A DNA stretch of 64,000 nt from Pocillopora damicornis (Eukaryota), in assembly GCF_003704095.1 (NCBI RefSeq), contig NW_020844403.1, positions 1 to 64,000 on the forward strand, read 5' to 3'. Under the pieces are notes generated by a model. That model did no database searches. It had not been told where the DNA came from and was given only the letters and a program-made list of their open reading frames with translations. Both the position numbers and the translations under genes were made by a program. Below, one piece after another: positions 45,280 through 51,035 of the stretch (position 1 is its first letter; the number at the start of each line of letters is the position of its first letter).

Positions 45280-47399
45280 ATGACCACTGCTGGTTCATGT
45301 ACAGTCATAGATGGAAGTGATTCCTCATGGGGTGATAGCACGTACAAGCTTTATTCTACGAATAAAGATCCAGAAGATCACTACTTGCATTTCGATGGCA
45401 AATCCAATTCGTTGAAAGCAGATGGGGACGGCACGAACAACGGTGAGAAAAAATAATAATATGGTGTTAGGAAGATTGCTCGTCAAAGATATCATCCTCT
45501 ATCCTTCGGTTTGCGAGAATATTCGCGTAAGAATTTATAGGTCTGGTGAAACAAGGGTAGGCATGTCTTAAGTCCCGGTTGATGTCCTTTGAAAGCAATT
45601 TATTATTAGTCAATGAAACGGTATATTATTACCATTATTACTATTGCTGTTTTCATCATCATTATCTTAATTTTTTTGGTGTCATTCATATTATCATTAT
45701 TGTGTCATCAGTAGTTCGTATTACAACATCCTCTATTTGGGGCCAAAATATGCACGGATATTTGTCCACGGACATTACCTGTTCTAAGATGCGAACAGTT
45801 TTCTGAGAGCGGAGCTGTTGACTATTCGCTGGTACGACTTAATGAACAAAAAAATATATCCCTCCTTATGTAACAACCACAAAACGCTCTCTCAGATCTT
45901 GAATTAAATTTGAAACGAAGACTTATCGTGGTGGACGAAAGGTTTGAAAAATTGGAGAATATCACGTGGGCGGTGGAATATTCGGTCATGGGATTCGTTT
46001 AGATCATTCGCGCACGAGCGAAATATTTAATGGAGCATAAGTATTGTTAATGTTATCACAATCATTATTATTACCATTATCATCATTTTTAATATTATCA
46101 TTAAGACTAGGTTTATCCATATTATTCACAGCGGCTAACGAAAGTGTATTCCTGGGTCTTCAACTTTTTCGAGTGAATTAAAGCCGCACTGTTGCAATAT
46201 TTTGTGAATCGTCAACGAATGTTTGAATCATGAAGGACAAGAAGAGAATATTATTATCAGACTAGGTTTATCCATATTATTCATAGCGGCTAACGAAAGT
46301 GTATTCCTCGGTCGTAAACTTTATCGAGTGAATTAAAGTCGCACTGTTGCAATATTTTGTGAATCGTCAACTAATGTTTGAATCATGAAGGGCAAGANNN
46401 NNNNNNNNNNNNNNNNNNNNNNNNNNNNNNNNNNNNNNNNNNNNNNNNNNNNNNNNNNNNNNNNNNNNNNNNNNNNNNNNNNNNNNNNNNNNNNNNNAGC
46501 GGCTAACGAAAGTGTAATCCTGGGTCTTCAACTTTTTCGAGTGAATTAAAGCCACATTATAGCAATATTTTGTGAATCGCCAACCAATGTTTGAATCATG
46601 AAGGGCAAGAAGAGAATATCAGTTGTTGATTTTCTCTTGAGGGCATTTAATATTTCATTTACTATGAAGGCTCTTCATCCTTTTTTTTATAGCTAGTTTT
46701 ATATTCCACGAAGCCCCGGATTGTGTGGACAACGAGGATGTAACTATTGTTATTCTGGAGCANNNNNNNNNNNNNNNNNNNNNNNNNNNNNNNNNNNNNN
46801 NNNNNNNNNNNNNNNNNNNNNNNNNNNNNNNNNNNNNNNNNNNNNNNNNNNNNNNNNNNNNNNNNNNNNNNNNNNNNNNNNNNNNNNNNNNNNNNNNNNN
46901 NNNNNNNNNNNNNNNNNNNNNNNNNNNNNNNNNNNNNNNNNNNNNNNNNNNNNNNNNNNNNNNNNNNNNNNNNNNNNNNNNNNNNNNNNNNNNNNNNNNN
47001 NNNNNNNNNNNNNNNNNNNNNNNNNNNNNNNNNNNNNNNNNNNNNNNNNNNNNNNNNNNNNNNNNNNNNNNNNNNNNNNNNNNNNNNNNNNNNNNNNNNN
47101 NNNNNNNNNNNNNNNNNNNNNNNNNNNNNNNNNNNNNNNNNNNNNNNNNNNNNNNNNNNNNNNNNNNNNNNNNNNNNNNNNNNNNNNNNNNNNNNNNNNN
47201 NNNNNNNNNNNNNNNNNNNNNNNNNNNNNNNNNNNNNNNNNNNNNNNNNNNNNNNNNNNNNNNNNNNNNNNNNNNNNNNNNNNNNNNNNNNNTTCTGGAT
47301 GGTGCACAGCGAATTGTTGGATTTGACGAAAAGGGCAAGCCAATGAATACTACTGGAGTAACGCCACGTCAATTAGCAAGTCTCTTCGAGATACGCTGA
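45280..47399 (+). CDS. IL-1/FGF-like beta-trefoil candidate, copy A (partly in gap)
   Basis: TATAAAA at ~45179. Exon 45280-45442 (MTTAGS...YKLYSTNKDPEDHYLHFDGKSNSLKADG, phase 1), exon from 46693 into gap (SFIFHE...TIVILE), exon from gap to 47399 (QRIVGFDEKGKPM...SLFEIR*). Confidence 0.75.
46105..46620. repeat. ~155 bp tandem repeat (at least 3 units, gap inside) in intron 1 of copy A
   Basis: Unit gactaggtttatcc...agcggctaacgaaagtgt...gaagagaatat starts at 46105 and 46260 and resumes at 46498. Confidence 0.85.
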
Positions 47400-48430
47400 G
47401 TTAATATTTCCAGTTAGGCGCTGTCAACTTTTCTCAACTTTTAACACAACTTTCATGTTAAATTTATTTTAAATCAGAAACGTCCCTTGCGACAAGTAAT
47501 AACACCTAGTAACAAAATTGTTATCNNNNNNNNNNNNNNNNNNNNNNNNNNNNNNNNNNNNNNNNNNNNNNNNNNNNNNNNNNNNNNNNNNNNNNNNNNN
47601 NNNNNNNNNNNNNNNNNNNNNNNNNTTGTTGTTAGTCAATGAAACGGTATATTATTACCATTATTACTATTGCTGTTATCATCATCATTATCTGAATTTT
47701 TTTGGTGTCATTCATGTTATCATTATTGTGTCATCTGTAGTTCGTATAACAACATCCTCTATTTGGGGCAAAAATATGCACGGATATTTGTCCACGGACA
47801 GTACCTGTTCCAAGATGCGAACAGTTTTCCGAGAGCGGAGCTGTTGACTGTTCACTGGTACGACTTAATGAACAAAAAATATACCCCTCCTTATGTAACA
47901 ACCACAAAACGCTCTCTCAGATCTTGAATCAAATTTTANNNNNNNNNNNNNNNNNNNNNNNNNNNNNNNNNNNNNNNNNNNNNNNNNNNNNNNNNNNNNN
48001 NNNNNNNNNNNNNNNNNNNNNNNNNNNNNNNNNNNNNNNNNNNNNNNNNNNNNNNNNNNNNNNNNNNNNNNNNNNNNNNNNNNNNNNNNNNNNNNNNNNN
48101 NNNNNNNNNNNNNNNNNNNNNNNNNNNNNNNNNNNNNNNNNNNNNNNNNNNNNNNNNNNNNNNNNNNNNNNNNNNNNNNNNNNNNNNNNNNNNNNNNNNN
48201 NNNNNNNNNNNNNNNNNNNNNNNNNNNNNNNNNNNNNNNNNNNNNNNNNNNNNNNNNNNNNNNNNNNNNNNNNNNNNNNNNNNNNNNNNNNNNNNNNNNN
48301 NNNNNNNNNNNNNNNNNNNNNNNNNNNNNNNNNNNNNNNNNNNNNNNNNNNAGAATATCAGTTGTTGATTTTCTCTTAAGGGCATTTAATATTTCATTTA
48401 CTATGACGGCTCATTATGCTCTTTTTATAG

Positions 48431-49257
48431 CTAATTTTAAGATGTACCAAACCCCGGATGCCGATGGTAGAACAGTTGTTATTTTGGAGCACGCAAAATC
48501 TCGCAAAGTTATGGCCGTTGACAAAGAGAATGACACTGTCACTCTAGAGGTGCGTGACTGAAACGATTTCAGTCGGCTAGAAATTTAATCACCTTTGGTC
48601 ATTGATCAAAGAACTTTTAAACTTTGTGGTGAAATAAATTCGTTTGTCTATCGATGAAGTCCATTCCGATGTGGATTGCGGTGTTTTGACGGTATAATGC
48701 AAGTCTTCTTCAGGCGATGCATAAGGTGACGCCTGTCCAGTCGCTTATCGAATGACTTAATTATGAGACAAACGATTATGATTCACCGGAAGTACGACGA
48801 ATAACCGTAAGCTTCCCTACAATTTCAACTCTTTAAATGAATAAGGAGGCTAAAACTTACATATCATAATTATCATCTGTTTTGCCTGTGCGTGCCAATC
48901 GTCTAGTTGCCCGGAGAGTTAACATTTACGCTCAATTTCAATTCATTATCTGGATCTATCGCTTATATGCATGATACAATACAGATTGAGTTACAGCTTT
49001 GATTTTGGCCTAATTTTTGTCTATTCTGATAGGATCCTTCAGAGCCTCTGGATAAGCTCATGAAGAAGAGCGTAGAAGTGGCTCCTTACAAAATTCTGTT
49101 TCACAAGAGATGGGGGAAAGACGGTTATGGTAAGTTTTACTTGCAGTCACTTCTGGATGATAAACAGCGAATCGTTGGATTTGACGAAAATGGCGAGCTA
49201 AAGAAGACTATGGTTGCACAGCCAGATCATCCAGAAAGTCTCTTCAAGATATACTGA
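48431..49257 (+). CDS. IL-1/FGF-like beta-trefoil candidate, copy B (first exon presumably in gap 47526-47625)
   Basis: Exon 48431-48549 (NFKMYQ...VVILEHAKSRKVMAVDKENDTVTLE, phase 0 end) and exon 49033-49257 (DPSEPL...ILFHK...FYLQS...RIVGFDENG...SLFKIY*). Intron 1 sequence duplicates that of copy A. Confidence 0.78.
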
Positions 49258-51035
49258 TTGCCCCACATTGGCGCTGTCAACTTTTCTCAACTTTTAACAC
49301 GACTTTTTTAAAATTTATTTTAAATCAGAAACGTCCCTTGCGACAAGTAATAGCACCTAGTAACAAAATTTTCATCCAGGAAACGCATGTTGGATACCTG
49401 GCGAATAAATTTTATTTAAAAAAAACTTGGATAGTATGATTCTTTATCTGGAAACCGGTTTGATCCTAACCTGTCAATGGTGTTTTTGTTCTTGTTTTTT
49501 TTTAAAAGGCTGACACACCATAAAAATTTGTTCATTTTTGCCTGAACTTAACTCAACTTATTTGTTGAAAGGACTGGAGGAGGTGGGTGAGGTGGGGGTG
49601 GGGGGGGGAAGGAATGAGGTTTCCACCCAATCTTTTTTACAGAGCTTAAGCTGNNNNNNNNNNNNNNNNNNNNNNNNNNNNNNNNNNNNNNNNNNNNNNN
49701 NNNNNNNNNNNNNNNNNNNNNNNNNNNNNNNNNNNNNNNNNNNNNNNNNNNNNNNNNNNNNNNNNNNNNNNNNNNNNNNNNNNNNNNNNNNNNNNNNNNN
49801 NNNNNNNNNNNNNNNNNNNNNNNNNNNNNNNNNNNNNNNNNNNNNNNNNNNNNNNNNNNNNNNNNNNNNNNNNNNNNNNNNNNNNNNNNNNNNNNNNNNN
49901 NNCCCCCCCCCCCGACATAAAACTTTTGTTTGTTTCATTCCAGTAACGTGAAATGTCTTCAATTTTATCTGACGTTTTAAAGCTTAATTAAAAAACAGTA
50001 AATGAGGAACGTCTTTTGATCAAAAGTGCTTTAGCTCGATTCAAAAGCTTTTTTTTCATTCCGGTCATAAACCTCGCACGTTTACAAGCTCCCTTGGCTA
50101 TAAACCTTTTCGACCATTACCTTCATTGTCATAATCATCAGACCGCTGTTGTTGGCGCGCAAATTGCAACATATAGTTCTATCACAACATTCATCCCTTT
50201 TCGCGCAATTTCAAATTTACTTTGAACTATTTCATGCAATGGTTACAAATCGAATTTAGCCCCATTGCCTTGTCTTACGCAATCGCCCTTTTTCATTCTC
50301 ACTGCGCGTATATTTTTCGCAGTTTCTCTGATCAGATTTCAATTCCAGCTGCCTAATTTTTGGTTTGGGCTGTTGTACGACCTAGGCCGTAAGAAACAAA
50401 AATCTTGAATAGCAAAAGGTGAGATAGTGATTGAATGGTGACAAATTATCATCAGTTTTGAATTATCAATGTGTAAATTTTGTCATTTTATTTGGCTCGG
50501 GTGTATTTGAAAACGAAACGTTTAGATTATGATTGTGCTAAAACAAGGAACACGTCAACAAGAACTGTAAGAAAACAAAATTAGAAAGCGACTTTAATAA
50601 ACACTAATATCCACGTGGTGATTTTTTTATTTCTTTTGCTAAGTTTTGAATTTGACAGAGGGTTTATTTCTTCAGTATGACCCAAAAGCTTTTTTTTAAA
50701 CTTTCTTCTCTTAAATAATTGTCCTTCTCGTTAGCTTAATAACCATGAATTGATATTTCAAATTCTCCAGGATTAACCACTCATTGGTCATTCTCGACGG
50801 TGAAAGGAGTGAAAAATAAAAAGTTGTCTCCTGTACTAAAATAACAATGATGTAAACATTTTGTTTTCGCTCGGTCTTCCGGTCATACGAACTGTTTTTA
50901 TCAAATGCCTTATTTTCGCTTTTTGATGGTGAGTACAAAAAGAGTCATTTTGCCTTTGACTTCAATTTATCGTGCAGCGGTCTTTGGGAGGACTACGAGA
51001 GGTACACATTTGTTGCAAATTGATCACTCACTGCG

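Follow-up and report, generated by a model that had tools for sequence, protein, structure and literature searches.

Why should the coding exons of two closely similar gene versions differ far more than the introns between them? This question is raised by a locus of the coral Pocillopora damicornis in the first 64 kb (64,000 nucleotides, hereafter the window) of a 447-kb scaffold, NW_020844403.1, of an assembly of 234 Mb in 4393 scaffolds (GCF_003704095.1). The gene has three coding exons, and two versions of it, named A and B, are present at the locus. A sequence-only reading of the window had claimed that the exons of A and B diverge much more than their introns, and this is confirmed far beyond chance. 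In the pooled comparison of A-type with B-type sequence, 90 of 316 coding positions differ (28%), compared with 99 of 1635 positions (6%) in the 5' flank, introns and 3' untranslated region (3'UTR; p=4e-27). The explanation that we favour, with a confidence slightly above even, is that old, discrete exon types are held by diversifying or balancing selection, the non-coding backbone around them being homogenised by recombination or conversion. The parts of A and B found in the window are as follows.

45280-45442, + strand: A-type exon 1, from ATG to a phase-1 donor (open reading frame and GT donor; RNA joints from 45441/45442)
45443-46692, + strand: A-type intron 1 (self-BLAST; RNA joint 45441>46692), containing a 100-N gap at 46398-46497
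46693-46762, + strand: first 70 nt of A-type exon 2 (AG acceptor, frame), the rest lying within a 530-N gap
47293-47399, + strand: last 34 codons and stop of A-type exon 3 (translation)
47400-47525, + strand: piece of the A-type 3'UTR, of which the genome holds just two copies
47526-47625, no strand: 100-N join of the A-type 3'UTR to B-type intron 1, continuity unsupported
47626-47938, + strand: inner piece of B-type intron 1, 95% identical to 45600-45911
48352-48430, + strand: last 79 nt of B-type intron 1, with 6 of 79 positions differing from A
48431-48549, + strand: B-type exon 2 (RNA joints 45441>48430 and 48549>49033 in two runs; annotated in P0025 and P0087)
48550-49032, + strand: B-type intron 2 (GT..AG joint), with a dispersed repeat at ~48631-48719
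49033-49257, + strand: B-type exon 3 with stop, which six aligned natural variants divide into a variable head (49033-49135), a conserved core (49136-49190) and a variable tail (49191-49257)
49258-49425, + strand: B-type 3'UTR, with AATAAA at ~49404 and a poly(A) loose end near 49425 (run X17)

Divergence of exons and introns

Independent comparisons were made with gap-free Tara Pacific metagenome contigs, which come from other colonies and are 98-100% identical to the pieces of the window. The use of these contigs was limited to coordinates, identities and counts of differences, and the Ns of the window were left as N. The statistics are pairwise Nei-Gojobori (NG86) counts, Fisher tests and bootstraps, and codon pairs from separate exons were pooled for counting only.

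The contrast is present inside single contigs of the window. The head of exon 2 differs between A and B at 20 of 57 positions, compared with 6 of 79 in the last 80 nt of intron 1 (p=1e-4), and the tail of exon 3 differs at 25 of 102, compared with 14 of 119 in the 3'UTR (p=0.02). Since both regions of each pair sit in one contig, these contrasts are independent of scaffolding. Over all window pieces, 45 of 159 coding and 35 of 509 non-coding positions differ (p=2e-11). The earlier hand counts are borne out for the last 34 codons (A 47295-47396 against B 49153-49254), where 25 of 102 nt and 17 of 34 residues differ with one synonymous-only codon, and for the near-identity of intron 1, where 45600-45911 and 47626-47936 are separated by 15 substitutions in 311 positions and one 1-nt gap. 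The 3' flanks had been called nearly identical, which is too strong for the 11.8% of sites that differ overall. Directly after the stop, A and B are scrambled relative to each other over ~25 nt, and beyond this stretch the difference falls to ~6%.

The Tara contigs give the same result. Exon 1 differs at 45 of 157 positions and its 5' flank and intron 1 at 79 of 1437 (p=3e-17), and exon 2 differs at 27 of 119 and its flanking introns at 23 of 381 (p=1.6e-6). The contrast is thus shown for each of the three exons from contiguous DNA. In the exon-1 comparison every non-coding segment lies at 4.3-6.2%, transposon-derived intron DNA included. The repeat at 45723-45911 in intron 1 has at least 60 genome copies of 73-92% identity, none closer than 92%, and is probably neutral DNA that was in place before the A/B split. 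A conserved intronic element was also considered and rejected, as the intron similarity is uniform and extends over the transposon-derived DNA.

A second dispersed repeat, at 48631-48719 in intron 2, has at least 40 genome copies that are 73-92% identical. The intron-1 repeat stands at the same position in A and B, and the intron-2 repeat at the same position in B and the more distant paralog D. Intron 1 of A also contains a ~155-nt tandem repeat (46091-46619), with at least three copies across the 100-N gap and fewer copies in the B-type introns and in the A-type introns of the Tara contigs.

Both types are spliced and expressed. The joint of exon 1 to A exon 2 (45441>46692) is found in one RNA run, X17, and the end of A-type exon 3 in runs X15 and X17; the same tail type is also present in Tara contigs L031-L034. 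RNA contigs from two libraries join exon 1 to B exon 2 (45441>48430) and B exon 2 to exon 3 (48549>49033). The first of these joints belongs to a B-type transcript in which the end of exon 1 matches that of A. It is no proof of splicing across A, because B-type genes have an exon 1 of their own, which matches A exon 1 over the last ~30-37 nt only.

Discrete exon types and selection

The variation takes the form of blocks. When six natural exon-3 variants are aligned, intron 2 is near-identical, and exon 3 has an unvarying core of 55 nt, with two types of head before it and two types of tail after it. Intron 2 of B differs by 2-5% from the introns that precede the alternative exon-3 types. Divergence in the tail block continues for ~25 nt beyond the stop, after which the UTR is near-identical. 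A-type exon 1 differs between the window and contig L043 at 3 of 163 positions while the flanks differ by 6.5-8%. Because exons within a type are more conserved than their own introns, there is no uniformly faster exon clock. Contig L031 combines a B-type head (0 of 158 differences) with an A-type tail (1 of 97; p=3e-14), and a pseudo-exon at ~60420-60660 with an A-like tail is also counted as support for types uncoupled from the backbone. From one exon type to another, 23-29% of the DNA and ~50% of the protein sequence differ, mostly in loops, compared with 4-8% in the backbone of 5' flank, introns (which contain old transposon pieces), 3'UTR and downstream flank. These observations are best explained by discrete exon types, namely A, B and additional exon-3 heads and tails, that are uncoupled from the backbone.

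An excess of replacement changes is seen in exon 3. Between whole exon 3 of B and three alternative natural types, the non-synonymous divergence (dN) is 0.38-0.45 and the synonymous divergence (dS) 0.16-0.19, giving dN/dS of 2.35-2.6 (one-sided p 0.008-0.03). In the variable blocks the proportions of differing non-synonymous (pN) and synonymous (pS) sites are 0.38-0.43 and 0.16-0.19. The dN/dS is ~2.4-3.8 in the head and tail blocks and ~0.5 in the conserved core. Among the alternative types themselves, pN is 0.10-0.16 and pS 0.01-0.07. On the other hand, the dN/dS check named by the sequence-only reading does not favour its claim for A against B, where the 103 available codons give dN 0.38, dS 0.31 and a ratio of 1.22 (bootstrap 0.72-2.16), not significantly above 1. 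The non-synonymous divergence of A and B (pN ~0.30, dN ~0.38) exceeds that of non-coding DNA five- to sixfold (p=3e-24). Mapping of the variable sites on the predicted trefoil, also proposed earlier, gave a modest enrichment of replacements in loops relative to strands (61% against 41%; p=0.046).

Silent sites are raised as well. In codons that keep the same residue, 5 of 27 four-fold sites differ, compared with 5.5% of non-coding sites (p=0.016), and the NG86 pS is 0.25 in exons against 0.06 in non-coding DNA. Because silent sites also exceed the introns, we infer that part of the exon excess reflects greater age of the sequence and not a faster rate. The earlier claim of diversifying selection therefore stands in part: it agrees with the replacement excess in exon 3, and it is weakened by the non-significant A-B ratio, the raised silent sites and the conservation of exons within types.

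Competing explanations

Taken together, the silent sites, the discrete types and the conservation within types favour old exon types over a simple faster exon clock. Long-term diversifying or balancing selection would keep the old types. Recombination, unequal crossing-over or gene conversion among copies or haplotypes would keep the surrounding DNA young and set exon types onto different backbones. Several points weigh against this reading, including the A-B ratio of 1.22 already given. The silent excess rests on few sites, with the third positions of same-residue codons giving 7 of 65 (p=0.09), and NG86 inflates dS in codons with multiple hits. The variable blocks of exon 3 were picked after the data had been seen. 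L031 is one metagenome contig and could be a chimera across the identical 55-nt core. The Tara samples may mix several Pocillopora species, which limits any count of types per genome, and neither a donor paralog nor trans-species sharing has been shown for the exon types. A bolder version, which we consider unlikely, is that A and B form a hyperpolymorphic coral recognition locus encoding a leaderless FGF/IL-1-like ligand in three exons of old, balanced, recombining types; if true, the locus would be a candidate gene for allorecognition, or for the recognition of pathogens or symbionts, in animals for which no gene of this sort is known.

Plain acceleration, in which a tandem duplication recent enough to leave ~6% non-coding divergence was followed by fast, exon-only point substitution under positive selection, is an alternative that we rate as rather unlikely. 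It agrees with the sharp borders of the exon-limited divergence, with a dN far over the non-coding rate, with the dN/dS above 1 in exon 3 and with the tandem units seen at the locus in one independent contig, and the clean silent-site excess that speaks against it is borderline. However, acceleration does not account for exons that are conserved within a type on a backbone diverged by 6.5-8%, or for variation in a few discrete blocks with no continuum. The reach of the divergent tail block into the 3'UTR (~25 nt, including a 5-nt indel) and the raised four-fold sites also stand against it, as do the A-like and B-like tails found in older paralogs (the relic copy E and D). Another possibility, which we hold to be quite unlikely, is exon-limited ectopic gene conversion or segment switching, in which exon segments are imported from distant family members and introns remain untouched since only exons retain enough homology for exchange. 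Here the block borders coincide with conserved core motifs, the family has at least 13 genome copies in four clusters, and exon-segment switching (ASSET) is known in three-finger toxin genes (Doley et al. 2008, PMC2474615). However, no donor was found in the assembly, where the next-best match to A exon 1 or B exon 3 is 68-72% identical, and conversion leaves the replacement excess among the close alternative types unexplained.

An assembly artefact, that is, short contigs of different loci or haplotypes mis-joined, or near-identical introns collapsed, would be a natural suspicion at this locus. The assembly was built from short reads with Chicago/HiRise scaffolding of a heterozygous colony, as much as 14% of the unique content is absent from it, and gaps stand between five contigs of 233-1302 nt. 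The join at 47526-47625 is unsupported, as independent contigs continue differently on either side of it. In B-type contigs, 47626 is preceded by the start of B's own intron, by exon 1 and by a 5' flank ~94% like 44619-45279, and A-type 3'UTRs lead into a ~94%-identical copy of the flank at 49.4-50.4 kb. The published gene model pdam_00009648, which joins A exon 1 to B exons 2-3, is a chimera of the A and B types and shows how such a locus can be scrambled in a heterozygous short-read assembly. The contrast itself is found within single contigs and in the gap-free contigs of other colonies, and the same pieces recur in Logan contigs of four unrelated runs. As its source, an artefact is largely refuted and in our view very improbable. 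The 413-N gap at 47939-48351 lies inside B intron 1, and its sides are continuous in independent contigs with ~340 nt between them. The piece at 47626-47938 has 99-100% identity to gap-free Tara contigs, in which it lies between B exon 1 and exon 2, and no coding frame crosses either 47526-47625 or 47939-48351. Relaxed constraint, with one copy a decaying pseudogene and introns conserved for functional elements, could draw on the A-B dN/dS near 1, the pseudo-exon close by and the fairly well retained intron 2 of B and D. It was rejected and its probability is close to negligible, since neutral decay cannot place exons five times above transposon-derived intron DNA, the frames are open in all copies, both types are spliced and expressed, and the core strands are conserved.

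On whether A and B are neighbouring genes or alleles, the evidence points both ways. The exon-intron pattern had been offered as an argument against simple alleles, and as stated this is unsupported, the tandem order resting on 100-N joins around tiny contigs. On the side of alleles, the A pieces are contigs of 233-265 nt between gaps, the assembly has one copy of the 5' flank plus exon 1 and one copy of the downstream flank, the flanks of A and B types are colinear, and the published model joins the two. On the side of paralogs, at least four exon-2 head variants occur in one RNA run, and in contig L042 the downstream flank recurs, at 93% identity, ~700 nt upstream of the A-type 5' region. 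Because this flank copy stands ahead of an A-type 5' region, tandem units exist. Logan contig depths (apparently 1:1 in X8, ~1:2-3 in X4) were rejected as a test between alleles and paralogs, because they are per-contig k-mer means, ploidy and pooling are not given, and the tool itself cautions against such a use. Just upstream of its A-type 5' region, L042 also carries a degenerate remnant of exon 3 and 3'UTR (1494-1819, 71-79% identity), at a position that corresponds approximately to the 100-N gap at 43667-43766 of the window.

Related copies and the encoded protein

The paralog D, whose copy spans 64.0-61.7 kb of the window, allows the comparison to be extended. Its parts were placed by tblastn and open reading frames.

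61706-62720, - strand: paralog D
62595-62720, - strand: exon 2 of D
61958-62594, - strand: intron 2 of D
61706-61957, - strand: exon 3 of D

Between B and D, exons differ at 121 of 338 positions (36%) and intron 2 at 109 of 481 (23%; p=5e-5). The sequence-only reading had found a close match at the start of intron 2. The exons are indeed more diverged than the intron, but the match itself is looser than described, at ~85% identity: the first 150 nt differ by 15%, and the whole intron is 77% identical. The contrast recurs in other clusters. In cluster C883 the borders are sharp, 18-19% of exon and 7-10% of non-coding positions separate copy b from copies a and c, and dN/dS is 1.0-1.5; in cluster C2698 the exons of copy d are more diverged than non-coding DNA, with dN/dS of 1.8-2.1. 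In other pairs of these clusters exon divergence is close to intron divergence (dN/dS 0.5-1). The Stylophora locus L022 has a single family gene.

The product of the locus is best explained as a leaderless, FGF-shaped beta-trefoil of ~170 residues, with one trefoil repeat per coding exon. A similar hydrophobic-x-x-D-x-x-G motif closes each coding exon, as expected if each exon holds one repeat. The window exons were searched one by one and full-length database relatives stood in for the fold, which was modelled on the Stylophora relative P0022 and not on the spliced window protein. The AlphaFold model of P0022 is a beta-trefoil with a pLDDT of 88.7; an earlier fold from seven sequences was discarded (pLDDT 49). 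In Foldseek the top 50 matches to the P0022 model are all FGFs or FGF-derived designs (E down to 7e-8, TM 0.78-0.88), and in VIA-align FGFs reach Z 16.5-18.9 and IL-1 family members Z 14-15. The predicted fold is thus nearest to solved FGF structures.

The match to FGFs in sequence is weaker. The full-length relatives P0006, P0011 and P0015 match the Pfam FGF family (PF00167) on their C-terminal third at 13.8-16.1 bits (E 0.011-0.058), below the cut-off of 24, and the exons searched singly against Pfam gave no useful match. A STAR_dimer Pfam match of a single exon was put down to chance, as was the sole match, a pilin, in a profile search of PDB sequences; an Rfam match of B's contig to a snoRNA was sub-threshold (25 bits against 50). 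A profile search of 1.84 billion proteins found 73 relatives, none annotated as FGF. The named ones are "uncharacterized proteins" of Pocillopora, Stylophora, Oculina, Nematostella, Actinia and Exaiptasia; all being corals or sea anemones, the family appears restricted to Hexacorallia. The N-termini (MTTAGS..., METKE..., MSIEDRS...) are hydrophilic and by inspection without a signal peptide, no PDZ domain was matched by Pfam in family proteins of 164-201 residues, and a literature search by locus names gave no match.

Accelerated exon evolution is described for snake-venom PLA2 and cone-snail toxin (conotoxin) genes. As in these families, the introns and UTRs of clustered coral copies are much more alike than the coding exons, variation lies in distinct segments on a conserved fold, and replacement changes equal or exceed silent ones. 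In contrast, the coral protein lacks a signal peptide and is not known as a toxin, and the venom model lacks the conservation within types and the possible allelism of the coral locus. Compared with ASSET, exchange in the coral locus rests on few contigs. In the major histocompatibility complex (MHC), balancing selection maintains old exon lineages while introns are homogenised by recombination. The coral locus resembles it in its discrete types, in exon sequence that looks older than the adjoining intron at silent sites too, and in a replacement excess concentrated in part of the protein. However, the fold is a beta-trefoil and not Ig/MHC. The pattern is of a known kind (venom, ASSET, MHC), and what is new is an uncharacterised coral family with an FGF-like fold.

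Among FGFs, the absence of an N-terminal signal sequence recalls the leaderless FGF1/2 and FHF (FGF11-14), and the predicted fold best matches FGF8, 18, 12, 4 and others, although the Pfam score of 14-16 bits is under the cut-off. IL-1anc, a family of invertebrate cytokines with an N-terminal PDZ domain, a (F/L)ES motif in strand 9 and, in Hexacorallia, synteny with TRAF3, GCC2 and ESD, includes the Nematostella gene LOC5506646 (Fontenla-Iglesias et al. 2026, PMC13736523). Like IL-1anc, the coral family is fast-evolving and has a leaderless beta-trefoil on three exons and an F-x-S motif in a late strand. The strand equivalent to strand 9 reads F-[KQE]-S, with FES in the C2824 copies and one C2698 copy, and FKS or LQS in the remaining copies. 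The coral family is nevertheless not IL-1anc, because it lacks the PDZ domain. In Nematostella it is represented by LOC116617332, and IL-1 structures score lower than FGFs.

Exons more diverged than their own introns are rare and point strongly to recognition or arms-race genes, of which, to our knowledge, few have been described in corals. The genes of the family lie in clusters and are well represented among coral RNA libraries, and its predicted fold belongs to the FGF/IL-1 cytokine superfamily. Should the types turn out to be old alleles kept in balance, the locus would become a testable candidate gene for self/non-self or microbe recognition in corals. Should they turn out to be paralogs, it would exemplify venom-style exon diversification outside venom genes.

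Several smaller observations concern the 5' end of the gene. A TATA-like box lies near 45180, upstream of A-type exon 1, and the ATG of that exon has its homologue in the first mini-exon of paralog D. The promoter, 5'UTR and ATG of A (45058-45282) are homologous to scaffold C1038:66671-66888 (locus L036), where the separate first mini-exon MSIEDRS... is found. This mini-exon lies ~2.7 kb upstream of D and is used by the Stylophora relatives too; the intron after it seems to have been lost in A/B, which fused the start codon onto the first trefoil exon. In cluster C883 (loci L014-L016 at ~15.2, 20.9 and 31.1 kb) the first trefoil exon has no ATG in copies b and c, and according to database proteins the upstream mini-exon METKECGENKK gives the start. 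At 45399-45405, 6 nt (two codons) of A exon 1 are absent from all X8/X4 DNA contigs that cover the spot, which is an in-frame length polymorphism of exon 1.

Elsewhere in the window, a further copy, C, lies at ~52.8-53.3 kb (52798-53303, + strand). Its C-terminus departs from the family pattern after the G-F/K-F-E-E-N-G motif, and since the same ending occurs in the full-length relative P0026, C may be a real subtype. The exon-3 relic at ~60420-60660 (- strand) carries stops and frameshifts, and its A-like tail reads ...QLASLFKM.... The neighbours seen in this analysis are a trypsin-like relic and GPCR genes. Among long proteins, a 20-35-residue stretch of the family profile is matched six to seven times each in P0057, P0066, P0073 and P0081 (966-2252 residues), and in three of the four the match falls on the R-I-L-G-F-D-x-x-G region of the family.

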